From NCBI GenBank assembly GCA_002269645.1, contig NIVC01000708.1, positions 186,001 to 250,000 of the forward strand: DNA of 64,000 nt, written 5' to 3'. Below the pieces are notes generated by a model, which was not told the origin of the DNA, made no database searches, and saw nothing but the letters and a program-made list of their open reading frames with translations. A program made the translations under genes and the position numbers. The stretch comes from Macrostomum lignano (Eukaryota). Of this stretch, positions 1 through 44,977 are shown in pieces. Each line of letters begins with the position of its first letter. Positions within the stretch are counted from its first letter, which is position 1.

Positions 1-60
1 ATTGTTACTGGCAGCACTAAGGCAGAGAGCCCGTGTGAAAGGGCAAGCCCAGGTTCAGGT

Positions 61-3894: not shown

Positions 3895-4754
3895 TGACTG
3901 TTGACTTATTGCTAAACAAAACTTTTCAAATATGTAGTTTTTTGACGGCTAGTTTATGGTGTTTGGAATTATTTATCTTTTTCGTGTCATTATTTGCCGT
4001 TTTTTGCTCCTAATAGCTGAAGTGGTGATGGATTGCTTATTTTTGCGTATTTTGTGTTTTTTTATTTTGAGTAAAAAGACTTGTTGCTTGCTTGAATGCG
4101 AGTTCTTTTAGCAGATTTTGTGCTTTGATATTTTTCATATGTTTACAGTTAGAGATTATTTAAGTTTTCAAGACATTTTTCATCCCGTGTTATTTCACTA
4201 ATTATCGTTTGAGCATCTTTGAGTTCGTTTGTGTTCGTTTCTTAGCAGAGATTTTTTGTGTTGGCTAGCGATTGCAAAGGTTTATATTTGGCACACTATC
4301 TTTTGATCCCAATTGACACTTCACATTGCATGCGTTCTTAATGTTAATTTCTGATTTCGCGCGATTTATTTTTTTGTTTACAGGAGTTTACTGTTTTTTC
4401 GAATTATGCTTGCAACCGTTTCAATTAATTGCACGTAAGTTTCAAGGAGGCAATTTTTTTTTCTGCTTTTTTGCTGATTGGCCCCAATCAGGAAGGGGGG
4501 AATGTTCTGGAGGTTCATTTTTTGTCATATTTTTGGGGTTTTACTTATTTAATTGTACATGTATTTGCTCTTTATTTAATGTACATGAGCCAACCCCCCT
4601 CAATTTGCTAACCCCACCCCACGTTAAATAATAATTAAAAAGGGCGTGATTTTTGGTCAGCGTGTTTTTTGCTAGGTACTTGGTTGTTTTGTTTTGCCTG
4701 CGCGAGAACGCAGAGGTATTGAAGCCTACAAGCATCCGATTTTTGCCTACTTAG

Positions 4755-7700
4755 TTATTTTTCGGTTTCGAAGAGTTAGTCGATTTAACACCGAGAACGA
4801 CAGTTTTGCAGTGAGCTGCACGCTGTACTTCAATGGCTCGGAGATCATTGGTAACAACACAAGCGGCATGCAGCTGTGCCAACCAGATGGGAACTGCAGT
4901 GCGGGCCCGGAGCTGCGGATCAACAGGGCGCTGCGGCAGCACTCCGGCAGCTACACCTGCCAGGTGAACTCCACTCGAGTTTCAACCTTCGTTACCGTGC
5001 TGTGTGAGTTTCATTTCAATTTGAAATTGAACGGATAAAGAATGGCATTTTAACTCATCTGAAATGTTTGTCGTTAGCCCTACAAAAAACTTAGACAATA
5101 AGTTTCCACTTGACTAAAAAGCTTGCGATACAGATAATGATGTCGTTGTGTTGTTGTTACTGCTGCTGTTGTTGTTGTTGTTGTTGTTGTTTTTTGTTGT
5201 GCTTTTAAACCAATGAGATATAGTCAAGTCAGTTGGCACGAGACGGGCAGGTTCGAGCCTGGCCCAATCCAAACCAAGAAAGTTCGACAGAGAGAGAGTT
5301 GGAGCGCGCTAACCCGGCGAGACAAGCCATGCACAGCCGCCCTTGTATCCGAATCCCGAACAGATAGGTAGCGAAACACCGAGTTGTCCTTCCAGTCGCC
5401 CAGCTTCTTGATGATCATCGGCAGTGGAACACCGAGCTGCATGGCTGCTGTAGCGCCGCGCCGCCGCAGCCTGTGGCTAGTGAACTCACGTGGTGACAAA
5501 CCCGCCGATGTGTACAGAGTGCGAAGCCGGCCATCAAACCTGCTAGCCGTCAGAGGCAAACATCCCGTTGCCGACCACGTGGAGAACAGGTGAACCGGAC
5601 GCGGCGCCTGGCCGACTCGGTTTGTCCGTAGCTGCCGCTCGAGCGCACGGAACGGGCACAGGACACCCAAGCTCCCATCAGGCAGTTTCGCAAGAAACAC
5701 TCGCTGAACTCGGTCGCCAAACTGGTTGGTCTTTGAATGCCGTACGGTGAGCTCACAGTCGCACTTTGAAAAGACGATGTTTGATGCCGCCAGGTTGCAC
5801 CACAGATCTAGCCGCTCCGATTGCATCCGATCACATTCGCTTTCCGCAGCATACCCCACCAGGCTGCCAGAACAGCTGCCCAGAACGCGATGTCACTCTT
5901 CTTTCGTTGGTCCAGGTGGGCGTTCAGCTTGAGGAGATCTGCGATTCTGAGGGGCTCCCTTGAGCGCTGCTACCGACTGAGACATCAGCGAAGACCACAG
6001 ACCACAAAGCACCAGCTTAACCATCGGCGACTCACACGGGTCCGGCCGACCGAGGGCTCTGAAGTACAGCGAGACCGCGTTAGCGTACGCCTGGCAGCTC
6101 CGAAAGACTGACAGCCGGGTGGACAACTCGGCCACTTACACGGCCACGTGCACCGGCTGCGCGCGCACCGGTGTCAAGTGCTAGGAGTTGCAAAAACACA
6201 GCCAGGACGCGAGCTGCGACCGGTAACTCCGCTTTGTGTGGGGCCAGCAGGGCCGAACGGAGACAGCAGGGCAGAAAGCATGGCTGGCGATTTCATTAAA
6301 ACAGCAGTTTACAGTGCCATACACTCAAAATAAAAAATCGCGCATCTTGCCTACCGCGTGCAGCCGAGAGCACGGGTCCGCAAAAACGAGGCACCAGCCA
6401 GGCATATGAAAAGTGTGCACATCAACCCCACGCCTAACAGCAATGAGCATGGCAGTCTGGAACAGCGGCTGCAACTCAGGCTGCCGGCAGCAACCTCTGT
6501 TATCATACCAACAGCCGCGACTACGACCGTAGTAGACCACGACCGAACCGTCATTTAAAAAGACACTCCAGCGAACAATAGCCAATAGCGGAACAATAGC
6601 TTCTTTGTACGTAATATGCTTGTCTTTAAACTTTCCTCCAGCATCCAGATCCCAATTGACATACAGCCAATCCATCATTCCGCTACCATTGCGCAAAATG
6701 GCACCACCACCAGCACTGCTGGCATCGGTTTCGATGATCCAGCCGTTTGTGCGACTTCTCCAAAGCTGAAAATCAGGCAGCTTCAGAAGGGCACCGCGCC
6801 ACCAGAGTAAAATACGCACAGTGTCAGCGGACACTCGTACTTTGTGATGTGGCTTTTCCAGCGCATTAGGCAAGTCGAACAGGGGCCTGAGGAAGCAACT
6901 CCCAGCGTGCACCACTTGGACGACCCAGCTGAGCTTGCCACAAAGCGACGAAAGCTGGCGTTTCGAGAGACGCCTGCTCTGCGAAAAATTAAGCAGTGTG
7001 GTGCGCATTTCCTCACAATTTTCCGCCGGCACACTAAGAACTCCACGGACCGTATCAATCTTCACACCGAGATACACCAAGCATTGCGTAGGTTCAACCA
7101 CTTTGTTCCAATTGACACCAACACCCAACTGGCGAACCAACTTCATCAGTTCTTTCAGGGCATCTATACACTCCTCCTCGCTCTCGGCCGCAACCAGAAA
7201 ATCATCCAGGTAGACCGAACTATTGGCCACACCGGTCGCACCATCATCCTCTTGACCGCTTGAGTAAGCCGGTAGAAAATCTCGACCGAGGCGCAGCTAC
7301 CAAAGGGTAGCCGGGTGTCGATTAGCCATGTCAGATCACGGTTGCCTTTAAAGCGCCAACCAATGCCAGTCGCATGGTAATCATCCGGATGGATCGCCAC
7401 ATTTCTGTAAGCTTGCGACAAATCAAGCTTTGCCATGAACCAGCCCTTGCCGATAGAGGCTGCAGCGTGCAGCCTTCTTGACGGACTCAAACTTAGGGCT
7501 CAGCTTCCTCGTATAAGTGTCTTTTACCGAGTAGCCCGGAGGCGTGCTGCAGTCATGAATAAATCGAACCTTCCTGTTATCCTTGGGAGTAGCTCCCAGA
7601 GGGCTGACCATCGTAGGCTTCTCAGGCACCACCACGTATCTGCCATTCTCAGTCTCTTCCTTAATTTGCAGCTTTGCAGAGTTCAGTTTTCGTCGGATGG

Positions 7701-10700
7701 TTCGCCTCATGGTGGGCCTCAAAACAGATACGGCAAACATGTCGGAATTTGCAGCTTGACAGGAAGCACCCCCGGCGATTAAAGTGCAAGTAGATCTCTA
7801 GCCCGTCTGCCGTTCTGAGGCTCTTGGGGTCTATTGGTTTTGAAAACGTTGCTGCCGTGGCTGGGGTAATAACTTGCTGACTCCATGGTTTGCTCGAGTT
7901 CCAGTTCTGATTAAGTGCTTAGCAACGAGTTGGAAAGACTCCTTGCCCCAGCACATACCAGTTTCAGCTTGCCTAGTGCGTTAGTCCTCGTCAAAACGGT
8001 TCACCTGAGCAAGGCCGAAGCCCGCGTCAAACAGCTCGCCTATCTGTATTGAGTAGCGTAGGTGATTCATCAAATCAGTCGTGTCGGCAATTCCATTCCT
8101 ATTAGTCACCAGGGCACCATCCTTGATTACGTCAGTTTGAGGCAGGTATCTGACTCTAACTGGTTTTAAACCCCCCCCGCGCCGGCCCGGCCTCGCTTTG
8201 GTGGGTTGGTGGGGTGCTGGTGCTCTGCGTGCGTGCAGGGCTTAGGGCAGCCTCCCCCCGCTCTGTGCTATTTAGTCACGCGTCGCGGCCGCTGAGTCGG
8301 CGTAATTTTGGCAAAATATTTTTAGCCTGCCTGATTTGCCAAGCACTGCACTCACAATGGACTCTACGTTGGGCAGCATGACCGTGCAGGCCCTCAAAGA
8401 TGCCTTACGCGAGAAGGCCTTACCTACAAGTGGCAATAAAGAAGAGCTGATAGGCCGCCTGCTCGCTGCAAGCCAGGCCGAACGAGCTCCCAGCGATGAC
8501 GACGGTGACGACGACCAGGACGAGGATGACGTGCGCCGGGCTGCGCCAGCGGAGGAGGCCACAGAAGCGCAGATTCGGCAGACTCAGAAGAGGATCGAGC
8601 TGCTTAAACTGCAGAAGGCTGAGGCCCAGTTGCGGGATGAAGTGCAGTCGATCCGCAGTGGCGCCGCATCGCCCCCGCTGGCCAGAGGAGGGCCGGACAT
8701 CTACGCCAGCCTGTTCGGGGACCAGAGCCGACAACCGAGGTTTGATTCGGCCGGAGCCCAGCGGCCCCCATCAGCGCTGCTCATCCCGGAATTTCTGGAC
8801 GAGAGGCAGCAGTCGGGAGGATGGCTGACACAGGAACGTGGTCGCCTGACTCTGAAAGGCGCAACGCCGAGCCTGTCCGGAGTCAACTTCGGCCAGTGGG
8901 TGGCTGCCAACGCGCGGATCATGCAGCGACTGCTGGAGACCGGCCAGCTGGTGGCGCCCGGTACGGATGGACAGCCCGACTGCAAGAGTCTGAACGCCTA
9001 CCTCAACTTTAACATCCACATCGGCGAGCTGCTCGACGCTGGCTACGACTGGAAGGTGGTGCTCCAGTACGACCAGGACATGAGGCTGCAGCAGCACTCG
9101 CGACAGCGCGACTGGGACAGCCCCGATCTGAACCTCATCATCAAGCATATGACGGCGCCCAAAAACCTGCGAGCTGCTGGCCCAGTCGCGGTCGGTCAAG
9201 GAGTCCAGGGTCACCGTAGCAGGGGCCAGCTGTCATCCGCTGGACAGGTCATCTGCGGCTTGTTCAATAGCAACAAAGGCTGTCACAGACACACCTGCAA
9301 TTTCGCCCACATCTGCCGCATCTGCGAAGGGAGCCACTCAAAGCTGCAACACAGCTCGGTGGCTGCCGAATCAAAAAACTGAGCAAAGAGGCGGGTCGCG
9401 GCGGCACCAGTTTTAGCCCTAAGCGGACGGCGTCTGATAGACAGTCCAAAATTTTAATTCCATGCGAGACAGCTGCTCGCACTGCCACTGGCCCTGCCGC
9501 TCGCCCTGCCACTCGCCTTGCCGCTCGACCTGCCACTCGCCCTGCCGCTCGCCCTGCCGCTCGCCCTGCCGCTCGCCATGCCACTCGCCCTGCCACTCGC
9601 CCTGCCGCCGGCCCTGCCGCCGGCCCTGCTGCCGGCCCTACTGCCGGCCCTGCTGCCGTTCCTGCTGCCGGCCCTGCTGCCGGCCCTGCTGCCGTTCCTG
9701 CTGCCGGTCCTGCTGCCGGCCCTGCTGCCGGCCCTGCCGCCGGTCCTGCTGCCGGCCCTGCTGCCGGTCCTGCTGCCGGCCCTGCCGCCGGTCCTGCTGC
9801 CGTTCCTGCTGCCGGTCCTGCTGCCGGCCCTGCTGCCGGCCCTGCCGCCGGTCCTGCTGCCGGCCCTGCTGCCGGTCCTGCTGCCGGCCCTGCTGCCGGC
9901 CCTGCTGCCGGCCCTGCTGCCGGCCCTGCTGCCGGTCCTGCTGCCGGCCCTGTTGCCGGTCCTGCTGCCGGCCCTGCTGCCGGCCCAGCCGCCGGCCCTG
10001 CCGCCGGTCCTGCTGCCGGCCCAGCCGCCGGCCCTGCCGCCGGTCCTGCTGCCGGCCCAGCCGCTGGCCCTGCCGCCGGCCCTGCCGCCGGCCCCGCTGC
10101 CGGCCCTGCTGCCGGTCCTGCTGCCGGCGCTGCTGCCGGCCCTGTTGCCGGCCCGGTGGCTGCACTCCGAAAACGTTGGCCGCTGTTAACTGCTGCTTGG
10201 ACACCAGTCCTGCTCGGAGACTCGGACGCGGAGTTTCTGATCGCGGGAATTCGCGATGGCTTTCGCATCACCGACGCGGCTCCGACCAGCGAATCCCAGC
10301 TCGAAAATCATGCATCCGCCCGCTGCGAGGCAAATCGGAATGCCGTTGAGCTGCAGATCAGAGAGGAGGTCGTGGCTGGCCGGTACATCAGCGCAACTGA
10401 CTTGGGCATCGCCAGGCCGACCATCATCAGCCCACTGGGCGCCGTCCCGAAGGCAGACGGCGCCATCCGCCTGATTCACGACGCGTCCGCGCCACAGGGC
10501 AACAGCCTCAACGATCTGTACAAGCCCCGCCAGAAGATGAAGTTTGCCAATGTCGAGGATCTCACCAGGCAGCTGGCACCAAGCTGGTTCATCAGCAAGG
10601 TCGACCTACGCCACGCCTACCGAAGTGTTCAGGTGCACCCAGACTGCTATAAGGCGACGGGGCTCCGGTGGACGTTCGAGCTGGACGGTCAGCCCACTTA

Positions 10701-13700
10701 TCTGGTTGACACGCGACTCCCATTCGGTGCGGCGGCATCAGTCAACATTTTCCACCGCCTAACGCAAGCTGTCAAGCGCTTTATGTACAGGCAATTCTCG
10801 CATCTGTCCAAATTCGTCGTCATCGCATACCTCGACGATTTCTGCATAGCTGCCCGGGACTACGAGGTCTGCCTGCAGCTGCACAATTTTCTGCTGGTCA
10901 CCCTGCAGCGCCTCGGCTTTGAGATCAACTGGGCCAAGACGCAGAGCCCAGCCACTTCGGTCACTTTCCTGGGTGTGCAGATCGACACATTGACTGGCCT
11001 GCTGTCACTGCCCGCCAAGAAGATGGACGGCCTTCGAGAACTTCTCCAGGACTGCGCCAACTCGAAGAGCCTGCAAAAACGTCGCCTTCAGCACCTAGTC
11101 GGCAAACTGAACTGGTTCTGCAAAGTGGCCAAACCTGCAAAGGCCCTGCTTCGCGCGCTCCTGGAGATAACCATCGCTATTCCTGAGCAGCATCATCGAG
11201 TACCGGTGCGCGGCGAGCTACTGGCCCAGTTGCAGTTCTGGCAGCATGCAATCCCAGTGTTCCCGACCGACAAGCTGTGGCGGCGTGCACGAGTGCTGGC
11301 AGCGGTCGAGACGGACGCCTGCGTCAGTGCCGGTGGCATGATCCTGAGCACCTCTGATGGCCAGCGCGAGTTCCGCCTCGTCGACTTCTGCAGTGACGCC
11401 GGTGGCATCTTCCTGAGCGAGCACATCAACGCCAAGGAGACGGTACTGCCGCTGCTCGCCATCATTCTGTTCCAGGAGCAGCTGGCCGGCGGCAAGGTGG
11501 CCTGCTACGTCGACAGCAGCGCGGCGGTCGGCACCATCAACCGCGGTGCCTCCAGCAACCCGATCGTCATGACCCTGCTCAAAACGGCCACTCTGGCAGC
11601 GCTGAGGCACGACTTTCAGTTTCGAGCTCACCATATGCCGGGGTCCTGGCAGCTGCTGAGCGACCCGCTGTCGCGCTGCCTGACGCATCCCCGCCACATG
11701 CTGCTGTTTCTGCTGCGCTACTTCGGCCGGGCCAAGGCGCAGCCGGAAGATCTGCGCAGGGCCTGCCTCAATGAGTCAACGGCGGCCCGGTTGCTTGAGC
11801 AGGCGTCGCTCGCGCTGAGCCCCGGTCTCTGGCGCAGTTCTCGAGCGGAGCGAGTTGCGACGGCTGAAGCAGATCCCGAGCTCAGGTACGAGTCTTAGAG
11901 CTATTGCTTGGACCTGGCTTTTTTGGCTTGGTTTAATTTTTTCTGCGGCTCGTTGATTTGATTTTACACGCTTGTCTCCTTCTCCCTCTTTCTGTTGGTG
12001 TTGGGGTTCGTTTTCCCTTTCTGGGCCGCGTCTGCCGGTCTTTTGTGCCACTTGCTTTTACTCTGCGTTAGTCTTTTGGGGTTTAATACGTCAGTTTGAG
12101 GCAGGTATCTGACTCTAACTGGTTTTAAACCCCCCCCCGCGCCGGCCCGGCCTCGCTTTGGTGGGTTGGTGGGGTGCTGGTGCTCTGCGTGCGTGCAGGG
12201 CTTAGGGCAGCCTCCCCCGCTCTGTGCTATTTAGTCACGCGTCGCGGCCGCTGAGTCGGCGTAATTTTGGCAAAATATTTTTTTCTTTTAAATTACAAAA
12301 TCAATATATTTCGTCGCTTAAGGGGTTCGTTTTCCCTTTCTGGGCCGCGTCTGCCGGTCTTTTGTGCCACTTGCTTTTACTCTGCGTTAGTCTTTTGGGG
12401 TTTAACATCTGCATCATCAGCCTGCCATTGCCTACCAAATACTGCGCTGCTGTGATGCTATTATGTTTTCTGCTCTTGTAAGTGATTCGGCTACCAAAAT
12501 CATTAGCCAGTACCTCTTTCTGCTCAAAGCCGTCAAGGAAATCACGAATCAGGAGAGCCTTACGCCTGCCCGAACACTCCATCCGTTCATTAGCCCTGTT
12601 CCGAGACAACAATCTACCAAGTTGCTCATTGCCATTATCTTCCTGGTCTAATCCAGCATCATCGCACACATCAGGAAGGCAACTGGGAGCAGCAGGCTTG
12701 GCACACTCACCGCGATTCATAGGATGGACACTCGCGCTGCAGATCTCCGATCTCCCTCTTGAGTTTAGCGGCTTCCTTGTGTAGCTGCAACAGTCTGATC
12801 TCCTTCTCTGCCTTCGCGATGTCCTCGTCCAGGCCCGCCGCCGACTCCCGAGCCGCCTCCGTGCTGATGTTGTCGTCTGCATTAACTTCTTGCTCAGATT
12901 ATTCCATGTTCTGCAACAGCGAGTCTGTTCACGACTGGTCTGGGGCCGCGAGCAAGGCGCTGACAAGGTCGGCCTTATTGCCCCGACTGCTTACATTAGC
13001 GTGGGCACACAAGGCTTGCAGAGCCATGCACCTTGCTCAGGTGCATGAGTTTCACCCGGTCCGCCATTGCAAAAAGAATCGATACGCACTTGGCAGGCCA
13101 TAGGCAGCCCGCCCCATTTTAGATAAAGGCACATAAACCGGGGGCACGTGAACAAAGGCCCGGCCCACCAACCCCCTGGACCAACGCACAAGAGCCACCC
13201 CCACTGGTTTAACACCCAACCAAGCTACGCCCGGCCGGACCAGTTATTATTTAAGCTCAATCATCCCTCATATTTGCAAAAAAGTTGCTGTGCAAACATC
13301 TGCCGTGCAGAAGTCTGGCCCAGCCAAATTAACCAATAAATCCGCCTTTATTCGATAACTGAAAAGCTTATTGATCGAACTTGATGAACTCCATTCCCCT
13401 TTTTAATATGCTCACAGACCCGCCATCAAGCGCATCAATTTCTGTACTCAATCTGCCAACCTGCGAGAACTCATCCGACGTATTGGTACAGTTCGCATCG
13501 TCTGCATCTCTACCAGTGCCCGAGCACAGATGCGGCGCTGTTGGTGGCGGATTGGAAGTGCGAAACCTCACGCAGCTGTCATTTGTAAATTGCTTGCATT
13601 TTGCAATTTCACACTATGAGTGACTATCCGCTGACATGCTGACCAGCGAGCTTCATCAATTCCAGAGCTCGAGTGGAGACGGTTGGGTCAGCACGTGGGC

Positions 13701-14275
13701 ACTGGCGATCGGGGGGAAGCTGAGCTCAGAGTGGCTTGTGGGCCTCGTCGAGTGCAGCGCAGTGCAGAATCTGCCGCCGGAGATCCGGTTCAAGACCGAG
13801 CACAGGGCCTCAGCTTGCTACAGCTGCGGCAATCACAAAGGTCTCATCAAACCTGATGTGCAGTCCTTACGCATGTACATTTCACAGTTCCTGTACGGAT
13901 TTCTAACAGCAACTGCTCTGCTAAGTGTGCTCTTGCTTGTCTTGGGCTCGGTGAGTAACCCCTCTCTCTACATTATATTTTCCGTCTCTGTGCTCTAAGC
14001 TGCCGTGTTGCATCTGCTAAATTCAGTTTTCAGTCATCAAATTCAGAGTAAAGAAGTCGTGGAAAAAACAAACTATTCCAATGGTAAGCTTTGGTTTTCT
14101 CATTCTGTACAGTCGACTCAAACTGTGACAGCTAAAGTTCGAACTCTTTGCGCTTTAGTCTGATCGATCCACGACGCCCGGATCTGGAGCACCGGTTGCT
14201 GCCGCTTCTGCTGCCATGGAGTATGAGAACTCTGGTTACAACCTGGAGGATGCTACTGGTGTCTACGTGATCTGA
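4755..14275 (+). CDS. IgSF type-I membrane receptor, paralog A, 5'-incomplete. Exons 4755-5003 (acceptor uncertain), 13418-13584, 13666-13950, 14027-14083, 14159-14275
   Basis: GT-AG exons with compatible phases (1,0,0,0). The joined protein reads Ig (VSC...QHSGSYTCQ...TVL) + YPP linker, then a membrane-proximal domain (VLVQF...NLTQLSF|[11 protein letters not shown]...[10 protein letters not shown]). The TM is [21 protein letters not shown]|FSVI, followed by basic [10 protein letters not shown] and a tail ending [19 protein letters not shown]. Each exon is homologous to one in the gene at 20885-38583. Confidence 0.75.
4791..5157 (+). repeat. ~367-bp near-identical copy of 22843-23209 (Ig exon plus downstream intron)
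   Basis: Direct comparison at offset 18052. Only a few substitutions were seen (ggctcg/ggttcg; aaattgaacgga/aaattgattgga). Identity ends at a (GTT)n tract. Confidence 0.95.
5224..6330 (-). pseudogene. Tyrosine recombinase of Ngaro element 1 (frameshifted)
   Basis: The SAM-like N-terminus [17 protein letters not shown] lies at 5893-6135. Catalytic motifs [19 protein letters not shown] (HxxR), LGDW and the terminal FRYL lie in ORF 5224-5859. Confidence 0.85.
6325..7740 (-). pseudogene. RT/RNase H of Ngaro element 1 (split over three frames)
   Basis: ORFs 7423-7740, 7164-7490 and 6325-7230 carry consecutive RT and RNase H motifs homologous to 10156-11898. Confidence 0.87.
8357..9382 (+). CDS. 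Ngaro gag-like ORF1 (SAP/HeH domain, coiled coil, C-terminal CCCH/CCHC finger)
   Basis: [30 protein letters not shown] (SAP-like) at the start and [28 protein letters not shown] at the end. ATG at 8357. Confidence 0.85.
   Translation: MDSTLGSMTVQALKDALREKALPTSGNKEELIGRLLAASQAERAPSDDDGDDDQDEDDVRRAAPAEEATEAQIRQTQKRIELLKLQKAEAQLRDEVQSIRSGAASPPLARGGPDIYASLFGDQSRQPRFDSAGAQRPPSALLIPEFLDERQQSGGWLTQERGRLTLKGATPSLSGVNFGQWVAANARIMQRLLETGQLVAPGTDGQPDCKSLNAYLNFNIHIGELLDAGYDWKVVLQYDQDMRLQQHSRQRDWDSPDLNLIIKHMTAPKNLRAAGPVAVGQGVQGHRSRGQLSSAGQVICGLFNSNKGCHRHTCNFAHICRICEGSHSKLQHSSVAAESKN
9373..11898 (+). CDS. Ngaro pol (RT + RNase H); frame open from 9271, likely entered by -1 frameshift at 9373-9379
   Basis: [32 protein letters not shown] and RNase H VETDAC/VDSS motifs. 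I found no stop and no ATG in this frame between 9271 and 10156. Confidence 0.85.
9490..10150 (+). repeat. 12-bp GC-rich tandem repeat (GGCCCTGCTGCC variants) inside Ngaro 2, reading (PAAG/PAAR)n in the pol frame
   Basis: Visible period-12 array with occasional 9-bp units and no frame-breaking indels. Confidence 0.9.
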
Positions 14276-14295
14276 GGGTTTTCAAGCTGGCAAAG

Positions 14296-17200
14296 TGATC
14301 CTGATCCGGATACTGGTCCTGGTCCCGATCCTGATCCTGATCCTGATCCTGATCCTGATCCTGATCCTGATCCTGATCCTGATCCTGATCCTGATCCTGG
14401 ATCCTGATCCTGATCCTGTCCTGATCCTGATCCTGATCCTGATCCTGATCCTGGATCCTGATACTGATCCTGATCCTGATCCTGATCCTGATCCTGATCC
14501 TGGATCCTGATCCTGATCCTGATCCTGATTCTGATCCTGTCCTGATCCTGATCCTGATCCTGATCCTGATCCTGGATCCTGATCCTGATCCTGATCCTGA
14601 TCCTGATTCTGATCCTGTCCTGATCCTGATCCTGATCCTGATCCTGATCCTGATCCTGGATCCTGATCCTGATCCTGATCCTGATCCTGATCCTGATCCT
14701 GATCCTGATCCTGTTCCTGTCCTGATCCTGATCCTGTCCTGATCCTGATCCTGATCCTGGATCCTGATCCTGATCCTGATCCTGATCCTGATCCTGATCC
14801 TGATCCTGATCCTGATCCTGATCCTGATCCTGATCCTGATCCTGATCCTGATCCTGATCCTGTTCCTGTCCTGATCCTGATCCTGTCCTGATCCTGTCCT
14901 GATCCTGGATCCTGATCCTGATCCTGATCCTGATCCTGATCCTGATCCTGATCCTGATCCTGATCCTCATACTGGTCCTGATCCTGATCCTGATCCTGAT
15001 CCTGATCCTAATACTGGTCCTGATCCTGATCCTGTCCTGATCCTGATCCTGATCCTGATCCTGATCCTGATCCTGATTCTGATCCTGATCCTGATCCCGA
15101 TTCTGATCCTGATCCTGTCCTGATCCTGATCCTGATCCTGATCCTGATCCTGATCCTGATCCTGATCCTGATTCTGATCCTGATCCTGATCCCGATTCTG
15201 ATCCTGATCCTGTCCTGATCCTGATCCTGATCCTGATCCTGATCCTGATCCTGTCCTGATCCTAATCCTGATCCTGTCCTGATCCTGATCCTGATGCTTA
15301 TCCTGATCCTGATCCTGATCCTGATCCTGATCCTGATCCTGATCCTGATCCTGATTCTAATCCTGATCCTGATCCTGATTCTAATCCTGATCCTGATCCT
15401 GATCCTGATCCTGATCCTGATCCTGGATCCTGATCCTGATCCTGATCCTGATCCTGATCCTGATCCTGATCCTGATCCTGATCCTGATCCTAATACTGGT
15501 CCTGATCCTGATCCTGATCCTGATCCTGATCCTAATACTGGTCCTGATCCTGATCCTGTCCTGATCCTGATCCTGATCCTGATCCTGATCCTGATTCTGA
15601 TCCTGATCCTGATCCCGATTCTGATCCTGATCCTGTCCTGATCCTGATCCTGATCCTGATCCTGATCCTGATCCTGATTCTGATCCTGATCCTGATCCCG
15701 ATTCTGATCCTGATCCTGTCCTGATCCTGATCCTGATCCTGATCCTGATCCTGTCCTGATCCTAATCCTGATCCTGTCCTGATCCTGATCCTGATGCTTA
15801 TCCTGATCCTGATCCTAATCCTGATCCTGTCCTGATCCTGATCCTGATGCTTATCCTGATCCCGATCCTGATCCTGATCCTGATCCTAATCCTTATTCTG
15901 TCCTGATCCTGATCCTGATCCTGATCCTGATCCCGATCCTGATCCTGATCCTGATCCCGATCCTGTCCTGATCCTGATCCCGATCCCGATCCTGATCCTC
16001 ATCCTGATCCTGTCCTGATCCTGATCCCGATCCTGATCCTGATCCCGATCCTGATCCTGATCCCGATCCTGATCCTGATCCTGATCCTGATCCTGATCCT
16101 GATCCTGGATCCTGATCCTGATCCTGATCCTGATTCTGATCCTGTCCTGATCCTGATCCTGGATCCTGATCCTGATCCTGATCCTGATCCTGATCCTGTT
16201 CCTGTCCTGATCCTGATCCTGTCCTGATCCTGTCCTGATCCTGATCCTGATCCTGATCCTGATCCTGATCCTGATCCTGATCCTGATCCTGTCCTGATCC
16301 TAATCCTGATCCTGTCCTGATCCTGATCCTGATGCTTATCCTAATCCTGATCCTGATCCTGATCCTGATCCTGATCCTGATCCTGATCCTGATTCTAATC
16401 CTGATCCTGATCCTGATTCTAATCCTGATCCTGATCCTGATCCTGATCCTGATCCTGATCCTGATCCTGATCCTGATCCTAATACTGATCCTGATCCTGA
16501 TCCTGATCCTGATCCTGATCCTGATCCTGATCCTGTTCTGATCCTAATCCTGATCCTGTCCTGATCCTGATCCTTTTCCTTATCCTGATCCTGATCCTGA
16601 TCCTGATCCTGATCCTGATCCTGATCCTGATCCTGATCCTGATCCTGATCCTGATCCCGATCCTGATCCTGATCCTGTCCTGATCCTTTTCCTTATCCTG
16701 ATCCTGATCCTGATCCTGATCCTGATCCTGATCCTGATCCTGTCCTGATCCTTTTCCTTATCCTGTCCTGATCCCGATCCTGATCCTGATCCTGATCCTG
16801 ATCCTGATCCTGATCCTGATCCTTTTCCTTATCCTGTCCTGATCCCGATCCTGATCCTGATCCTTTTCCTTATCCTGTCCTGATCCCGATCCTGATCCTG
16901 ATCCTGATCCTGATCCTGATCCTGATCCTGATCCTGATCCTGATCCTGATCCTGTCCTGATCCTGATTCTGATCCTGATTCTTTTCCTTATCCTGTCCTG
17001 ATCCCGATCCTGATCCTGATCCTGTCCTGATCCTTTTCCTTATCCTGTCCTGATCCCGATCCTTATCCTGATCCTGATCCTGATCCTGATCCTGATCCCG
17101 ATCCTGATCCTGATCCTGATCCTGATCCTGATCCTGATCCTGATCCTGATCCTGATCCTGATCCTGATCCTGATCCTGATCCTGATCCTGATCCTGATCC

Positions 17201-17360
17201 TGATCCTGATCCTGTCCTGATCCTGATCCTGTCCTGATCCTGATCCTGTCCTGAACCTGTCCTGATCCTGATCCTGATCCTGATCCTGATCCTGATCCTT
17301 ATCCTGTCCTGATCCCGATCCTGATCCTGATCCTGATCCTGATCCTGATCCTGATCCTGA
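14296..17360. repeat. (GATCCT)n hexamer array, ~3 kb, with variant units
   Basis: Directly visible. Variants include CTGTC, AATACTGGT, GATGCTTAT and TTTTCCTTAT. Confidence 0.97.
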
Positions 17361-17879
17361 GCCTAATTCGATTTATTGTTCTCAGTTCATGAGGATGTGT
17401 TTATCCCAGAGCTAGATTTACCGTACACATAGGCCAATATATTTTATTTTACTGCGCTTAATACACCTTAGAAATAATGACGCAACACTCCCGAATACTG
17501 TAAAACAGTTTTGAAGCCGACAGTTCAATTACCAATATCACGTGATCTGTTTGATGCGGCAGCAAAATTCTTTTGATAGCTTTTTTCAGAATTTATTCAC
17601 AATTTACTTTTTTGCCAATAAACCATATGATATATAGTATTAGCTAATGCTAAAGATTTGTCTGTGTCTTGAGCTACATCATATCTAGCCTAAAGTCCAA
17701 AAGCTAAGCACTGCAGGTCATTTGATGTTTTCAACAACAGTTTAATATTGGTCCAAGACGTTTTAAAACAAATTTATATTACCATACCTAATTTCATACT
17801 AAATTATATTAAAAAACAACCATGTACACTCTTGCCGGCCACAAGTGGTCACAGAGGGGGGAGGTGTCAGAACACACGT

Positions 17880-18760
17880 CATTGGGCCGCACTTCTCAAA
17901 AATTCATCTCCTTCAGTCAGAGTCGGAACGGGGGTTCTCGCATCCTTCAGAAGCAGCTCAGGGTAGCGCGTCGTTTGCCCTTGGCTTCGTCTCCGCGGAT
18001 CCTGCACCGTTGACAACAGCAGGTCGTGTAACGGCTCACGGCAGCGACTCTTCGACCGGATGACGTGGCCAGCCAGCTTGAGCCAGCTTGAGAGCGCAGC
18101 ATCGCAGAGTGCTCGGCGTAGAGCAGAGAAAAGTCTCGACGACTGTCCGAAACAGCTGAGCCCTGGTCGCGTCATCCAGAGCCTCAGATCGCAGCACTGC
18201 GAGTGCACCGAGCGTAAGGCGTCTCCTCAAGTCACAGGCGATATCAGGCACGAGTTCGCCGAGGTATACAAAATGGGCCCGTTCTATAAAGCCATCGTAA
18301 GATAAGATTGTTCTTAGCTCCTATCTCCGCAGTGTAAAAGTTCCGACGTACGATCGAACTTACGCTACGACAGCTTTATAGTACGACCCCAATGTGTGGA
18401 AGCGGGGTCTCATTCCTGACAGCATCTCGGCAGGTCCAGCGTCATAGTGAAGACTTCTGCGCGTGCAGCGTGAGGCCGACCATCGCTGCCGCTTTCGTCA
18501 AGCCATCCAGCAGCCGTTGGGCGCCTTCGACTGTTGAAGACACTGCAACGCTAGGTCATCCACGTAGCCGAGCACACAAAGACGCTTCTCCGGATGCCTC
18601 CGACTCATGCGACGTCTAAGCATGAAGCCATTGCCATCGTCCGACTCAGGCAGTCTGGTTCTCAGCACCCAGTACTCGTACGGTACCAGCACAGATAGAA
18701 AAGGCGCCAGCGTGTCAACCTGAAGCAGTAATAATCTGCAGTACATGTACAAAGACCAGC
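17880..18760 (-). pseudogene. Decayed non-LTR retrotransposon (RTE-like) RT and 3' region
   Basis: Minus-strand fragments LQVDTLAPFLS (QGDTLAP-like), LGYVDDLAL (YADD-like) and KLAGHVIR...EPLHDLLL...RRRSQG..TRYPELLLKD. Frameshifted, with approximate boundaries. Confidence 0.7.
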
Positions 18761-18928
18761 ATTAAAATTCGCATCTGGATTTTTGCTCTTCCGAATTCCA
18801 AATAGAGCTCTGTCAGGCGAAATTTCAGCTGTTCCTGGCTGTTTGAAATTATTGAGTTATAGTTTAATAAAAGTTTCATCATTAAGCAACGATGCTTTGC
18901 ATAAATGCAAAAGAAAACTCTATTTCAG

Positions 18929-19140
18929 CAATTCCTATACTGACTCGCGAGCAAGCCGTAAACCTATCTGTGACCTGCAGTTCACTGCATACTGCAACGG
19001 CTCAGAGTTCAACAGCAACTCAAGCGATCTGCTGCCCTGCCAACCCAGTCGCAGCAGCAGGGGAGGCCGCAGCCCAGTGGTCTCTCATGTGCCAGCGGCC
19101 CAGGCCCAGCAGGCACGATTCCCAAGTGCAGTCACAATAA
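18929..19140 (+). pseudogene. Frameshifted Ig pseudo-exon of the same receptor family (paralog B remnant)
   Basis: Acceptor tatttcag at 18928 in phase 1. It reads EQAVNLSVTC, then after a frameshift YCNGSEFNSNSSDLLPCQP...AQAQ, matching [24 protein letters not shown]...AQSQ of exon 22502-22738. Confidence 0.5.
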
Positions 19141-19584
19141 TTTGGGGCTAAATTGGAACCTCTTGGGTCTGCTCGTGAAATTAACGCCCTTGATGGCCAA
19201 CCCCCAAGGCACAGTGAAGTGTACATGCCTAACGATAAATAAAGTTAGGCCTGATGTACACTCCTGTTGTGACACAGAACTCGACACTTGCCAACTGGGT
19301 TCTGCTAACAGCTCACTGTTTTGATGGCATTCTGTGTTCTTAAATTTCCTGGACGCAATCATGCAATACAAAGGCCTTCAGACCCTCTGTCGACCTAGTC
19401 TATCATTGTGTTGAAACTTGTGTGAAATTTATGTCCTAGTCATCTGTCCTATGCAGCGCACCTGGCTCAGATAAAGTGGCAGCCGACTTTGCAATTTTTT
19501 TAAAGCCGCGCAGCAGCTGAGGATTGAGAGCCACAGGATGCTGACTCCGCCACCGTAAGTTTTATAGTATTATTAGTAAGCTTT

Positions 19585-20258
19585 ATCTGTCACCCGCTCC
19601 TCAATCTGTCACTCATTCCTCTATCTGTCACTCGCTCCTCTATTTATCACTCATTCCTCTATCTGTCACTCACTCATCTATCTGTCACTCATTCCTCTAT
19701 CTGTCACCCGCTCCTCTATCTGTCCCTCGCTCCTCTATCTATCACTCATTCCTCTATCTGTCACCCGCTCCTCTATCTGTCACCCGCTCCTCTATCTGTC
19801 ACCCGCTCCTCAATCTGTCACTCACTCCTCTATCTGTCACTCATTCCTCTATCTGTCACCCGCTCCTCTATCTGTCACCCGCTCCTCTATCTGTAACTCA
19901 CTCCTCTATCTGTAACTCATCCTCTATCTGTCACTCACTCCTCTATCTGTAACTCATCCTCTATCTGTCACTCACCCCTCTATCTGTCACTCACCCCTCT
20001 ATCTGTCACTCACTCCTCTATCTGTAACTCACTCCTCTATCTGTCACTCACTCCTCTATCTGTAACTCATCCTCATCTGTCACATTCCTTTATCTGTCAC
20101 TCACTCCTCTATCTGTCACTCACTCCTCTATCTGTAACTCACCCCTCTATCTGTCACTCACCCCTCAATCTGTCACTCACTCCTCTATCTGTCACTCACT
20201 CCTCTATCTGTCACTCACTCCTCTATCTGTCACTCACTCCTCTATCTGTCACTCATTC
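19585..20258. repeat. ~19-22-bp minisatellite (CTCTATCTGTCACTCACTC)
   Basis: Directly visible tandem units. Confidence 0.92.
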
Positions 20259-20884
20259 GTCCCTATGCTCGTATAAATGCTATCTCTTCATTTTAGCCAA
20301 CTCAATTAGTTGAAAGAAAGTATTCTTTTAGTACATCAATGTCAATGTCATATCACGTCAATGAGGGCTATGCATCAACTATGCATAACAGTTTGCTAAA
20401 TTTCATCTGAGTTTTCATCTCAATCATTTCTCATCCTATTTCATATTCATTTTTCTTTAAGCAAGCCATCACGTTCCAGCATCGCATGTTCAAATAGAGT
20501 CATTTTATGCGAAATATTTACCTGCAGGGTCAGAGACGGCCAAGCAAACTTAGTCCCCATCGGAGCCAGGAAACCCAAATATGATTTTCGTCGCTTATTC
20601 AAACCAAGTTCAGTTTGGCCAAGGACTTCTATTATCTAGAAGTCCTTGGTTTGGCTAAGCTGCAGCCAGAGAGTTTGTAAACATTTTATTTCAACTTGCA
20701 GTCTTATACACAGATGGAACTTGTAGTCACCACCTGCCGGAACAGAACTTGCGACTGCAGCCCTGCATCAATGGTTTCTGCAGCCAAATACAAAAGCCAA
20801 GACACAAGATCAAAATGGATTATTTTTTGCTGCGCTTGTTGTACTAACGACAGAATTGCTTTGAAGTGATCAGCAAGTGTCTGC

Positions 20885-23800
20885 ATGATGGAAGCTGCAG
20901 CGCTGATCTCCCTGTTAGGGGCTCTGCTCTGCATCGCTACCTGTCTCTGCGACTGTGAGTGAAAGCTTTTTAAACCCTCCAGGGTGTTTTTTCAAGCGAA
21001 ATGGATTTCTAACTTCTCAAGTTCCTATGTTGCAGGTGAGGTGCCGATTCGCAACAAGACTGTACTCAACGCCTGGCAGTCCTCTTATTCCTATTCTTGC
21101 TTTCACGAGAGAGACCAGCTGAATGAGAGCAATGTTCTGAACACAAGCCAAAGTTTTCAGTTCATTCACAGCAATGACAAAAAGCATTTTAACGATAGCG
21201 GATTTCACTGGTTCGCTGTGCAGCTGAGTGAGTCAGTGCTCATCGGTTCTGTGACAGTGAAGGGCAGCGAGGGTGAGTTACACCACAGACCAGTTTTATG
21301 AAGCACTGATTGACTAGTTGGTTAACTTACTTGACATAGCTTCAGGGGGTCCGGGCATCCGGATGCAGCGAGGCGTCGCCGCCCATTTTGCAAACCCCTG
21401 GCGACCAGGGAAGCTGGTGCTGCGGTGTTCTGCAGGGAGATCCGGTGGTGCCAGTGTCCGCAGCGCGGTAGCCCTTAGGTAGCGGACGAGCTGGCAGAGA
21501 TTCTCGGGCCTGAAAACGTCGGAGAGGTTCGAGTTTGGGCCGAGGTAGGTGAAGCCTGTCCTGAGTAAAGGCGGAGCATTCACAGATGAAGTGCTCCGCA
21601 TTCTCGACACCGGAGAGGCAGAAAGGGCATCATTCCTCGCTACGGATTTTTCCTGAAGGTAACGATGCCTGGCAAAACAGCCATGACCCGAGAGGTCCAT
21701 GGTCACCGCCCTGATGTCCCTGCGGTTGAGTCCAAGCAGGACTCTTGGCTAGTTGGTTGGTTTCATAAAAACAGCAGCTGCTTTTTGAAACAAAATAACT
21801 GAGGTAGCAGCATTCCTGAAACCCCCTTGCTTCCGGTATTTTTACAATCTCGTTGTTCTGGCTATAATTTCAGTCTTCTCGGATGCTGAAATGTTCCGCA
21901 GCTCAGCTGGCATCGAGATCTGGACTTCGAACTCGGAGGAGCAACTGTTTTCTGGCAACCATTGCAACTCAAAGAATATGAGCAAACAGTTTAATAAATA
22001 CCGGACCAGTTGGAAGCGTTGCGGTGTCACTACAAATAGGTCGATAAGTAGCACGCGTGTTGGGCTCTACATAGTGGACTGTCTTGCAGAGGTGAGCATC
22101 GATGCTACAGAGATTATGTGCTTAATTAGTTCATCTCACCCGGATCTCAAAATGTTGAGTGCAACATCCCAGGTCCGGTATCTGCTCCTCAGGAGAAACG
22201 TCAGCCTGAGCTTCTCAGCCAAAGACTACGGCTATCTGAGCGTCTCAGATCTGACGCTGCAGACAGTGCGCCTGGGTGAGGCTGTGGACTTTCCCAAAGC
22301 ACTTGAAGACCAGAGAAGCCTCAAAAGTGGCATGAAAATACCTGATAATATTGTGAGCTTTGGCCTGACTTTCTAGTCATCAGGCTTGTGCACTCTCTGT
22401 GCATTGGGGGCTGGCCTTCATGGGTCATGAATGACACGAGAACTCTCACGGTAAATAGCATTATAGCATTAAAGTATAAATTTATATGACTTGATTTGCA
22501 GTGCCATCGACAGACCAACTTGTTGCTGCAAACGAAAGCTTTAACGTGAGCTGCTCGTGCATTCTATGCAACGGCACGGAGTTGAGCACGAACTCAAGGC
22601 AGCTGCAGCTGTGCCAACCAGACGGAAACTGCACGAAAACCCGGAAGCTGTCGGTTGTGAAGGCACAGTCGCAGCACTCTGGCCTCTACACCTGCCAGCT
22701 TGGCTCTGCCGCAGAGTCAACTTCCATCACAGTGCTGTGTGAGCTGAGTGTCATTGCTTGTCTCCATATTTAAATACAATTAATAGACAAAAGCAACCAT
22801 AACGTGTTGCATTTTCAGCATCCTCGCATGCGCAAACAGCAGCCGAGAACGACAGTTTTGCAGTGAGCTGCACGCTGTACTTCAATGGTTCGGAGATCAT
22901 TGGTAACAACACAAGCGGCATGCAGCTGTGCCAACCAGATGGGAACTGCAGTGCGGGCCCGGAGCTGCGGATCAACAGGGCGCTGCGGCAGCACTCCGGC
23001 AGCTACACCTGCCAGGTGAACTCCACTCGAGTTTCAACCTTCGTTACCGTGCTGTGTGAGTTTCATTTCAATTTGAAATTGATTGGATAAAGAATGGCAT
23101 TTTAACTCATCTGAAATGTTTGTCGTTAGCCCTACAAAAAACTTAGACAATAAGTTTCCACTTGACTAAAAAGCTTGCGATACAGATAATGATGTCGTTG
23201 TGTTGTTGGTATTGTGTTTTTTATTTGTTGTTTAAAACTCAAACTCTCTTATTTGTAAAAAAATGTTGCACAAGCATCGTACTTGGATCTGGCTCAGCCC
23301 GATTAAAGCATCGAACTTGGATCTGGCTCAGCCCGATTAAAGCATCGAACTTGAATCTGGCTCAGCCCGATTAAAGCATCGACTTGGATCTGGCTCAGCC
23401 CGATTAAAGCATCGAACTTGGATCTGGCTCAGCCCGATTAAAGCATCGAACTTGGATCTGGCTCAGCCGATTAAAGCATCGAACTTGGATCTGGCTCAGC
23501 CCGATTAAAGCATCGAACTTGATCTGGCTCAGCCCGATTAAAGCATCGAACTTGGATCTGGCTCAGCCCGATTAAAGCATCGAACTTGAATCTGGCTCAG
23601 CCCGATTAAAGCATCGAACTTGGATCTGGCTCAGCCCGATTAAAGCATCGAACTTGGATCTGGCTCAGCCCGATTAAAGCATCGAACTTGGATCTGGCTC
23701 AGCCGATTAAAGCATCGAACTTGGATCTGGCTCAGCCCGATTAAAGCATCGAACTTGGATCTGGCTCAGCCCGATTAAAGCATCGAACTTGGATCTGGCT

Positions 23801-38583: not shown

Positions 38584-38625
38584 CACCTTGTCGTGCTGAT
38601 TGGCAATACCTCAATTTCTCAGCAT

Positions 38626-38781
38626 GTCAATCTTGTGATTGTCTCTGTCAATCTTGTGATTGTCTCTGTCAATCTTGTGATTGTCTCTGTCAATCTTGTG
38701 ATTATCTCTGTCAATCTTGTGATTGTCTCTGTCAATCTTGTGATTATCTCTGTCAATCTTGTGATTATCCCTGTCAATCTC
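38626..38781. repeat. 21-bp tandem repeat (TCAATCTTGTGATTGTCTCTG), ~7 units, just after the stop of receptor C
   Basis: Directly visible. Confidence 0.9.
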
Positions 38782-42927: not shown

Positions 42928-44885
<1,958 letters not shown>

Positions 44886-44977
44886 GGTGCGGTGGGACGC
44901 TGGGAAGCAGATCTGATAGGGGAACCGGAGAGGCTGCAGGCTTTGACCCAACAACGTGGGGTCACTTTCCTATAGGC

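Follow-up and report, generated by a model that had tools for sequence, protein, structure and literature searches.

The 64-kb stretch of Macrostomum lignano contig NIVC01000708.1 analysed here (the window) carries two tandem genes on its plus strand, which we call A and C. Both are predicted to encode type-I membrane proteins of the immunoglobulin superfamily (IgSF); only the 3' part of gene A lies within the window, and ten exons were modeled for gene C. A preliminary description of this DNA had reported that the two paralogs share one near-identical immunoglobulin (Ig) exon together with its intron, with only scattered motifs in common further downstream, and had read them as an activating/inhibitory receptor pair or an allorecognition-type cluster. 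We could confirm the arrangement of the two genes. Sequence conversion between the paralogs was well supported in our analysis, whereas activating/inhibitory pairing and allorecognition were not. We consider it likely that a recent non-allelic homologous recombination took place between A and C, i.e., between old tandem paralogs with cytoplasmic tails of different class.

We compared the window with itself by BLAST, and segment 4791–5182 matched 22843–23232 with 97.2% identity over 392 nt. When 4791–5156 and 22843–23208 were aligned base by base, 3/366 nt were mismatched, which bears out the near-identity across exon and intron described before for 4791–5157 and 22843–23209. The tract holds 213 nt of exon (212/213 identical) and the ~153 nt of intron that lie 3' of it. 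The sole exon difference, at position 4837 (GGC/GGT), is synonymous, and the intron mismatches are found at 5031–5032. Per 50-nt window, identity ranged from 0.96 to 1.00 as far as the breakpoint and from 0.38 to 0.56 beyond. It is lost abruptly from 5157 on, within a (GTT)n / T-rich run; in gene C, the distance between this 3' breakpoint and a minisatellite of 5 kb is ~60 bp. The left edge is equally sharp. Near-identity begins at 4791, i.e., 24 nt into the exon as delimited in gene C, and the 36 nt before it (4755–4790) have no counterpart in gene C. With such an alignment, chance is excluded as the source of the patch.

The self-comparison with positions 1–9000 as query gave no duplicated copy of 4.8 kb, as the preliminary description had worded it. 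Apart from the shared tract, this search gave as dispersed repeats only the Ig1 exon, an older copy with 69% identity, and a transposon terminal repeat of 197 bp, and the 5.1-kb object adjoining the gene C copy is the 34-bp minisatellite. Minisatellite and microsatellite arrays make up ~30% of the 64-kb window and swamp a plain repeat search; in total, tandem arrays with periods of 4–81 bp occupy ~19 kb.

Outside the patch, A and C have diverged strongly. In the YPPS exon that follows the Ig exon (exon 3 of this comparison), 24/56 aa are identical and third codon positions agree at 32%, which is near random. The next exon (exon 4) has 29/82 identical aa, and over the exons other than the shared one, protein identity is 35–43%. 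Transmembrane (TM) segments and tails are unalignable (11/56 aa), as stated before. The scattered motifs YPPS, V.VQF, NLT.LS, and ECSAVQ.LPP that had been noticed in the next exons are present in both genes, i.e., at 13418–13779 in A and at 28357–28532 / 37915–38031 in C. Two further matches to NLT.LS, at 28727 and 37881, were dropped as homologs, being translated sequence of a long terminal repeat (LTR).

We found the introns behind the shared exon to be related beyond the patch as well. In a local alignment, 13243–13331 of the gene A intron matched 23224–23305 of the gene C intron at ~70% (z = 7.5; 0/1000 shuffles equaled it), and control segments inside the transposon gave z ~0. Judged from these alignments, the two introns are colinear and homologous once insertions are removed, with the first ~153 nt at ~99% and the rest old-diverged. 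The patch therefore occupies the paralogous position, which speaks for ectopic conversion or crossover in place and not for a captured fragment. A capture would mean that the patch is a gene fragment moved by the BEL/Pao or DIRS-like elements beside it, or filler DNA at a break. Captured fragments often combine a partial exon with a partial intron, as the patch does, and transposons are found within ~50 nt on either side. However, the intron sequence beyond the 8-kb insertion has significant, colinear homology with the gene C intron, strand and phase fit gene A, and LTR elements normally do not transduce their flanks. We regard this origin as extremely improbable; capture or transduction by the flanking transposons was ruled out by the colinear intron homology beyond the 8-kb insertion.

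Comparison exon by exon gave incongruent relationships, as the preliminary description had anticipated. The Ig exon of A is identical in protein sequence to the second Ig exon of gene C (Ig2 or C2; 100% aa) vs 46% identity to the M. lignano homolog P0129. In the membrane-proximal domain, in contrast, A is closer to P0129 (51%) than to C (41%), and P0129 shares the tail class of A. Because of this incongruence, we conclude that the A/C split cannot be younger than that between A and P0129, and that the identity of the Ig exons is secondary.

An assembly artefact would also place two near-identical copies in the window, if an allelic or homeologous copy of the gene C Ig2 region had been stitched into gene A at low-complexity sequence. 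Such an error is conceivable where ~30% of the sequence consists of tandem arrays, where a transposon and a microsatellite delimit the patch to its left and right, and where its divergence of 0.8% is within the allelic range. The genome is moreover repeat-rich and possibly polyploid; M. lignano is a neopolyploid whose assembly has been described as difficult (PMC10733133). The patch has, however, the right strand, order, and splice phase for gene A. Identity already decays in the unique sequence 5157–5210 before the insert, and this decayed part is colinear with the gene C intron. A chimeric join would thus have had to hit a ~40-nt microsatellite precisely and to reproduce the paralogous position, and we hold an artefact to be highly unlikely.

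The left edge of the patch coincides with the probable end of a transposon. A BEL/Pao-type LTR retrotransposon enters the window from the left with an open reading frame (ORF) of 1297 codons, in which Pfam detected DUF1759, an Asp protease (weak), Integrase_H2C2, and, at residues 1200–1293, DUF5641. On these domains, the ORF is a BEL/Pao polyprotein with the signature order gag(DUF1759)-protease-reverse transcriptase (RT)-integrase-DUF5641; the RT was not reported by the Pfam scan of this ORF. Because the pol stop codon is at 3892–3894, a 3' LTR must directly follow. The probable LTR has a GC content of 35% and ends with ...TTTAACA (end sequence ...GATTTAACA), abutting the first base of the patch. 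TGTTGA at 3899 and TTAACA at 4790 form an imperfect terminal inverted repeat of the TGT...ACA type, and no similarity was detected between 3895–4790 and the sequences upstream of the gene C Ig exons. The start of exon A at 4755, as given in the preliminary description, hence appears doubtful, with near-identity beginning at 4791 and 4755–4790 unrelated to gene C. The corresponding acceptor 4754/4755 falls inside the probable LTR, and the 36 nt behind it have 33% GC, vs 50–58% at the starts of Ig1 and Ig2, and encode 12 aa unlike the conserved ..LVAEN.SF lead-in of the family. The Ig remnant of gene A lacks the first 24 nt and the acceptor present in C2. A young BEL/Pao element thus probably sits inside exon A and truncates it; its LTR boundary at 4790 is probable, and its 5' LTR and target-site duplication (TSD) would lie to the left of the window. 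With this insertion, gene A is probably a recently inactivated or mis-spliced copy in this haplotype.

Alternatively, gene A might be intact. The site 4754/4755 would then be its native acceptor, 4755–4790 its own diverged exon start, 4791 the 5' end of a 366-nt tract, and the LTR would end upstream in the intron. A pyrimidine tract precedes TTAG/TT at this site, the resulting exon of 249 nt keeps phase 1-1 in a frame open from 4676 on, and introns in the window are as AT-rich as 3895–4790. The low GC content of 4755–4790 and the missing lead-in in its product do not fit an exon start, however, and for this segment no similarity to the corresponding sequences of gene C was detected, in contrast to the opposite flank of the tract. 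Moreover, with pol ending at 3894 a 3' LTR is needed here, and LTRs typically end as this interval does at 4790 (...ACA). We therefore consider an intact gene A unlikely, and a truncation of its Ig exon by the BEL/Pao element the better explanation of the left edge.

From these observations, we propose the following course of events. A and C are old tandem paralogs, each belonging to one of two conserved tail classes. In a recent exchange, one gene probably received from the other the sequence of its Ig exon and of ~153 nt at the start of the intron behind it, either through a short gene-conversion tract or through an unequal crossover that produced a C-5'/A-3' chimera. The exchange ends on its 3' side at the (GTT)n microsatellite, and the repeats may have initiated it. 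The BEL/Pao element, probably located within exon A, would hide the 5' end of the exchange, and gene C would have to skip the duplicated acceptor made by a Ty3-like insertion. The short, sharp tract ending at a simple repeat and adjoining a 150-copy minisatellite resembles ectopic gene conversion near minisatellites and microsatellites in multigene families. Unlike in general repeat-linked conversion, we only infer a causal role of the microsatellite or minisatellite in starting the exchange. Divergence is 0.8% in the patch vs ~4.6% between the LTRs of the Ty3-like element in gene C (8 mismatches and 2 gaps, i.e., 165/175 identical positions), and the exchange must therefore be younger than the Ty3-like insertion. 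Features of the locus are collected in Table 1.

Table 1. Features of genes A and C and of the repeats between and within them (window coordinates; all exons are predictions)
Feature	Start	End	Strand	Remarks
BEL/Pao-type LTR retrotransposon, gag-pol ORF	1	3894	+	runs off left window end; 1297 uninterrupted codons; stop 3892–3894
Probable BEL/Pao 3' LTR	3895	4790	+	directly after pol stop; TGTTGA (3899), TTAACA (4790)
Gene A, Ig exon remnant	4791	5003	+	70 codons ENDSFAVSC...FVTVL; 212/213 as gene C Ig2
Gene A, intron part of tract	5004	5156	+	2 mismatches; stops at (GTT)n microsatellite 5157–5195
Retroelement insert in gene A intron	5211	13249	-	~8.0 kb; tyrosine-recombinase (DIRS/Ngaro-like); flanks TTTAAAC / TTTAAGC
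Nested element in DIRS-like insert	8128	12282	+	4.15 kb; 197-bp terminal direct repeats; SAP-domain ORF and RT ORF
Gene A, 3' part of intron	13250	13417	+	~70% to gene C intron, colinear
Gene A, exon with first half of membrane-proximal domain	13418	13584	+	ends NLTQLSF
Gene A, exon with stalk and TM segment	13651	13950	+	frame-keeping acceptor chosen; 66-nt intron
Gene A, juxtamembrane exon	14027	14083	+	modeled from splice sites and phase
Gene A, last exon, A-type tail	14159	14275	+	motif kept in M. lignano P0129, P0237, P0238
Degenerate Ig pseudo-exon relic	18950	19150	+	frameshifts; VNLSVTCS / CNGSEFNSNSSDLLPCQP; between genes A and C
Gene C, exon 1	20885	20954	+	start codon and signal peptide (23 aa); phase-1 GTGAGT donor
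Gene C, exon 2	21036	21272	+	N-terminal non-Ig domain; tblastn of M. lignano family proteins
Gene C, exon 3	21874	22091	+	N-terminal non-Ig domain; tblastn of M. lignano family proteins
Gene C, exon 4	22173	22275	+	N-terminal non-Ig domain (LLLRRN); tblastn of M. lignano family proteins
Gene C, exon 5 (Ig1)	22502	22738	+	237 nt, phase 1-1; 69% nt, ~50% aa to Ig2
Gene C, exon 6 (Ig2)	22819	23055	+	237 nt, phase 1-1; 22843–23055 inside patch; acceptor 22817–22818
Gene C, copy of converted tract	22843	23208	+	exon part and 153 nt of intron
34-bp minisatellite	23272	28349		150 copies, 99% matches; fills gene C intron to 7 nt before acceptor
Gene C, exon 7	28357	28532	+	YPPS...NLTLLSL
Ty3/Gypsy-like LTR retrotransposon	28584	37911	+	LTRs 28584–28758, 37739–37911; TSD CAGAA
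Gene C, exon 8	37915	38175	+	NSSENG...; TM segment
Gene C, exon 9	38286	38354	+	LAYSPV, match to inhibitory-motif (ITIM) consensus
Gene C, exon 10 (last)	38431	38583	+	C-type tail; match to switch-motif (ITSM) consensus

The predicted model of gene C has an open frame of 586 codons with consistent phases, AG acceptors, and GT donors, the weak donor GTTAGC of exon 8 being the sole exception among its splice sites. Its product would begin with a signal peptide and an N-terminal domain of ~185 aa, followed by the parts encoded by the two Ig-like exons. Two further exons (YPPS...NLTLLSL / NSSENG...) share the coding of a membrane-proximal domain with Cys residues, behind which come a TM segment and a tail of 73 aa with the motifs LAYSPV and TVYLDI. 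Twenty N-glycosylation sequons are present in the ectodomain. Exons 3 and 4 are separated by an in-frame intron of 81 nt without stop codons (22092–22172) and hence mimic a single ORF of 195 codons (21789–22373). This ORF had no Pfam match, yet comparison with M. lignano homologs identified it as coding and containing the 81-nt intron. In gene A, the homologous intron has the unit of the 34-bp minisatellite just once, in diverged form (13290–13331); the array therefore grew in gene C after the A/C split. A 21-bp tandem repeat (caatcttgtgattgtctctgt) is found at 38600–38790, ~40 nt past the stop codon of gene C in the presumed 3' untranslated region.

The Ty3-like element has LTRs with TG..CA ends, a purine tract before the 3' LTR, and the Pfam domains RVT_1, RT_RNaseH, Integrase_H2C2, and rve. 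From its LTR pair, TSD, polypurine tract, and RT-RNaseH-integrase order, we assign 28584–37911 to Ty3/Gypsy. A non-LTR element with endonuclease, RT, and RNase H is nested in it on the minus strand (~29600–35050). The insertion, with CAGAA as its TSD, hit precisely the 3' splice site of exon 8 in gene C, so that the AG acceptor is duplicated. The original acceptor of exon 8 persists at 28581 with an intron of 49 nt, and its usage would end the protein with ...LSLNVVK and a stop codon. As modeled, a full-length gene C product needs the duplicated acceptor at 37914, with 28581 being skipped. We also noted a GTGAGT donor in the Ty3-like LTR, at 28593 and 11 nt past the proximal acceptor. Possible outcomes of the insertion are a secreted, truncated isoform or a micro-exon that shifts the frame.

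In gene A, the donor GTGAGT at 5004 is of phase 1 and fits the exon at 13418. Splice sites of the predicted 3' exons are canonical and their frame is open; the final 19 residues are encoded at 14216–14275. The DIRS/Ngaro-like insert in the intron contains an RT (6328–7797), a recombinase (5227–5892), and a possible gag (12304–12990); Pfam found RVT_1, Phage_integrase (sub-threshold), and SAP over 5211–13249. The direct repeats of the element nested in it match at 99%, being identical but for two gaps in 197 columns, and its RT ORF includes a 12-bp tandem array (9482–10154) within the reading frame. Between genes A and C, the relic of a third Ig exon at 18950–19150 indicates, from its degenerate sequence, birth-and-death turnover in the cluster.

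Searches with protein sequences and profiles placed A and C in a so far uncharacterised, apparently Macrostomum-restricted family of heavily N-glycosylated type-I membrane proteins. We searched 1.84 billion proteins exhaustively with a combined Ig1 and Ig2 profile (HMMER) and obtained 111 proteins at E <= 0.001. Six hits covered most or all of the profile, and 6/6 were uncharacterised M. lignano proteins; this taxon statement covers the six full-length hits, and most of the others were partial profile matches. A follow-up search with P0129 found five more proteins, all from M. lignano, and a word-indexed homology search with a 377-aa gene C model gave no match. The true homologs of A and C are M. 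lignano 'Ig-like domain-containing proteins' (UniRef A0A1I8GJD6, A0A1I8H7P4, A0A1I8JJS2, A0A1I8H6J6; NCBI BOX15_Mlig012084g1). The family architecture consists of a signal peptide, an N-terminal non-Ig domain, 0–3 Ig exons, a Cys-rich membrane-proximal domain, a TM segment, and a tail with tyrosine motifs. Homologs share with A and C the N-terminal domain (motifs CEFPIRRSRVLSTWQSS...IEIWTS...LFSGDHC...LLLRR...SFADL.LQT), the type of Ig exon (LC.P.G.C ... HSG.YTC), the YPPS/NPPS domain with CSAVQ.LP, and both tail classes. They differ from A and C in sequence, with 34–55% protein identity between the window genes and any M. lignano member, and hence are different genes.

Tandem organisation is likewise shared. 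On M. lignano contig NIVC01002544.1, a segment of 12 kb holds at least three family genes in tandem. These have 0, 3, and 2 Ig exons, respectively, and no near-identical patches were found among the genes of this cluster. Introns are short and genes compact at the M. lignano loci that we examined, whereas the cluster in the window is swollen by transposons and minisatellites. The preliminary description had spoken of a cluster undergoing conversion; we could document a single event. Of the extracellular modules, only the conserved N-terminal domain of ~185 aa occurs throughout the family, even in members that have no Ig exon (e.g., P0240); it is probably the ligand-binding part. Some of the M. 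lignano models look like annotation artefacts: P0234 and P0239 each join the end of one gene with the beginning of its tandem neighbor, P0237 and P0238 differ in that the Ig exon and the NPPS exon are included in a mutually exclusive manner, and P0129 has no second half of the N-terminal domain.

Downstream of gene C, at a distance of ~5 kb, we found an Iroquois-class (TALE) homeobox gene on the plus strand (43400–44900). An intron splits its homeodomain after ...TLTQ (donor 43680, acceptor 43949), and runs of poly-Q, poly-A, and acidic residues are frequent in its C-terminal half. Its best named matches were M. lignano Irx proteins with 73–75% identity, including motifs outside the homeodomain. 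A 16-bp minisatellite (AAGTGTCGGAGATATG) at 50214–50934 of the window was ~82–89% identical to a sequence on an M. lignano contig that also bears family genes (L001 7718–9184). From these matches, the sequence belongs to a macrostomid flatworm, i.e., Macrostomum or a close relative; it agreed with no annotated M. lignano locus. Rfam and tRNA scans of the window for RNA genes were empty.

We assigned the extracellular domains with Pfam and the Protein Data Bank (PDB). The Ig exon protein of the window scored 25.5 bits for Ig_2, vs a cut-off of 27, and was also under the cut-offs for Ig_3, ig, and I-set. Its homolog P0122 passed the cut-offs for V-set (33 vs 26), Ig_2 (29.5 vs 27), and ig (26.6 vs 21.8), and the best 60 PDB hits of the Ig1/Ig2 profile were all Ig-domain proteins, with a best E of 1e-4. 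Cysteine spacing and motif are those of Ig domains, i.e., VSC ... 46 residues ... RQHSGSYTC in A and C2 and SQHSGLYTC in C1, and the shared exon has an extra conserved Cys pair, LCQPDGNC. A strand-C Trp was absent between the cysteines of A/C2, of C1, and of the M. lignano Ig exons. Some Ig-like domains have no strand-C Trp, so that its absence weakens the assignment and does not exclude it. For the N-terminal domain, the Pfam match to F5_F8_type_C had E = 0.0054 and 17.3 bits vs a cut-off of 28.2 (P0240) and was weaker for other members. Its profile had no match in the PDB, and for M. lignano P0237, AlphaFold with an alignment of six sequences gave an unusable model (mean pLDDT 35). From the Pfam match, the domain may be discoidin-like. 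PDB matches of the membrane-proximal domain were insignificant (Fab light chains, E >= 0.012).

The cytoplasmic tails fall into two types, which are conserved classes because both recur in M. lignano homologs. A-type tails end with YENSxYxLExAxGxY at the C-terminus, and YENS contains YxN, a kind of motif that is bound by the SH2 domain of Grb2. They are found in homologs as ...DYENSEYKLENAAGVYID and ...EYENSEYKLENATGIYIL, each followed by the stop codon, and YENS is kept in four genes. C-type tails read CxY ... CTVYL[ED]IVA and fit the consensus of immunoreceptor tyrosine-based switch motifs (ITSM) or YxxPhi; in homologs, they appear as ...ECSYLSV...DCTVYLEIVADAN before the stop. The terminal part is conserved as CTVYLEIVADAN in M. 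lignano P0240 and P0241, both with TVYLEI. One M. lignano gene (L001 gene 2) has CTEFLKIVADGD at its end, where Phe replaces Tyr. In agreement with the preliminary description, the tail of gene A has a YxN motif (YENS) and no immunoreceptor tyrosine-based inhibitory motif (ITIM). Its description of tail C as ITIM/ITSM-like stood in part: LAYSPV fits [SIVL]xYxx[IVL] and TVYLDI fits TxYxx[VI], both as consensus matches only, but LAYSPV is not conserved in the M. lignano homologs. Likewise, no activating motif (ITAM, YxxL/I-x6-8-YxxL/I) was found in the tail of gene A nor in P0129 and P0237, and the TM segments of these three have no charged residue. A signaling role of the tails is suggested by these motifs.

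Several points weigh against our account of the locus. The 5' boundary of the exchange is hidden, so that a range of tract lengths and both conversion and crossover are compatible with the data. The BEL/Pao LTR was called from one LTR, in a window whose introns are equally AT-rich (33% GC), and TTAG/TT at 4754/4755 could serve as an acceptor with the frame preserved, which leaves room for an intact gene A. All splice junctions of genes A and C are predictions from sequence. The Ig assignment of the window exons is just under the Pfam thresholds, with the canonical strand-C Trp absent, and N-terminal and membrane-proximal domains fit no confident Pfam or PDB class. The tyrosine motifs are short, the ITIM match LAYSPV is unconserved, and YxxPhi motifs may equally be endocytic signals.

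Vertebrate paired receptors are homogenised by gene conversion in Siglec-5/14, Siglec-11/16, and CEACAM pairs (PMC4042635, PMC5701461, PMC2832619). A and C share with these pairs that they are adjacent IgSF type-I paralogs with differing cytoplasmic tails, one having tyrosines in ITIM/ITSM consensus, and that a recent conversion tract covers an extracellular Ig exon and intron amid older divergence. For gene conversion between A and C, the step from ~99% to ~50% identity in colinear introns and the per-exon incongruence provide the evidence. A and C might function as a paired receptor, in which an inhibitory ITIM/ITSM partner and an activating or adaptor-recruiting YxN partner are co-expressed, see the same ligand, and are kept alike by recurrent conversion under selection, in immune, self/non-self, or mate recognition. 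Conversion joins members of two different conserved tail classes here, TVYL[DE]I is conserved between window and M. lignano homologs as is YENS in four genes, and the family genes form tandem clusters that vary in their number of Ig exons, as vertebrate receptor clusters do. The lone exon difference in the patch is synonymous, and the Siglec-11/16, Siglec-5/14, and CEACAM genes set a precedent (PMC5701461, PMC4042635, PMC2832619). At the level of the family, the idea of paired receptors thus gains something, as there are two conserved tail classes, one with ITSM consensus, and the exchange links them.

At the locus itself, the idea loses ground. The preliminary description had compared the two ectodomains to those of paired receptors, which are near-identical. 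A and C, however, have just one out of at least four extracellular modules in common: identity is confined to 70 codons of one Ig exon, and the membrane-proximal domain is at 41%. The shared module is internal and not, as in vertebrate pairs, the N-terminal ligand-binding region; the N-terminal domain of A, the likeliest part to bind a ligand, lies off the window. As the activating partner, gene A would be unlike its vertebrate counterparts, with neither an ITAM nor a basic TM residue for adaptors of the DAP12/FcR-gamma type, and with the YENSxYxLExAxGxY C-terminus instead; A and its homologs have no charged TM residue at all. Exon A is probably interrupted by the BEL/Pao element, i.e., the converted copy is probably disrupted, and the acceptor of the TM exon of gene C is compromised by its duplication in the Ty3-like insertion. 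The M. lignano cluster has no similar patches, and homology to Siglecs or CEACAMs does not go beyond the generic Ig fold. We therefore judge a functioning A/C pair to be improbable, and recent recombination between old tandem paralogs remains our preferred explanation.

The comparison with allorecognition fared similarly. Hydractinia Alr genes are clustered invertebrate type-I IgSF genes with tyrosine-motif tails, and A and C resemble them in these respects. Unlike Alr, A and C have a non-Ig N-terminal domain and come from a solitary flatworm; no allorecognition is known in the solitary Macrostomum. No sequence relation to Hydractinia Alr was detected, and the full-domain relatives in our homology searches were all from M. 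lignano, so that the link proposed earlier was not found. In the Macrostomum literature on ITIM, immunoglobulin, or gene conversion we found nothing relevant. An activating/inhibitory or allorecognition function of A and C is hence a hypothesis to which we give little credence.

The firm result is ectopic recombination between old tandem paralogs, with its 3' breakpoint resolved to a microsatellite beside a 150-copy minisatellite. Conversion or crossover of this kind is a well-known phenomenon (PMC5701461, PMC4042635, PMC2832619), whereas the receptor family was previously undescribed; we give the first description of this unstudied family with modular Ig exons and two conserved classes of tyrosine-motif tails. 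Macrostomum is amenable to RNAi and transgenesis (PMC5730564). As a speculation that we think has a small chance of being right, macrostomids might hold an independently evolved paired-receptor system, i.e., clustered lectin-like/IgSF receptors with ITSM-type (SHP-recruiting or endocytic) and YENSxYxLExAxGxY (Grb2-type) tails, whose extracellular modules are exchanged between the classes by conversion so that both see the same fast-evolving ligand of a pathogen, symbiont, or mating partner. If this were true, the patch would show one of these exchanges in progress. If the two tail classes signal oppositely, the logic of paired immune receptors, documented mainly in vertebrates, would extend to a lophotrochozoan.

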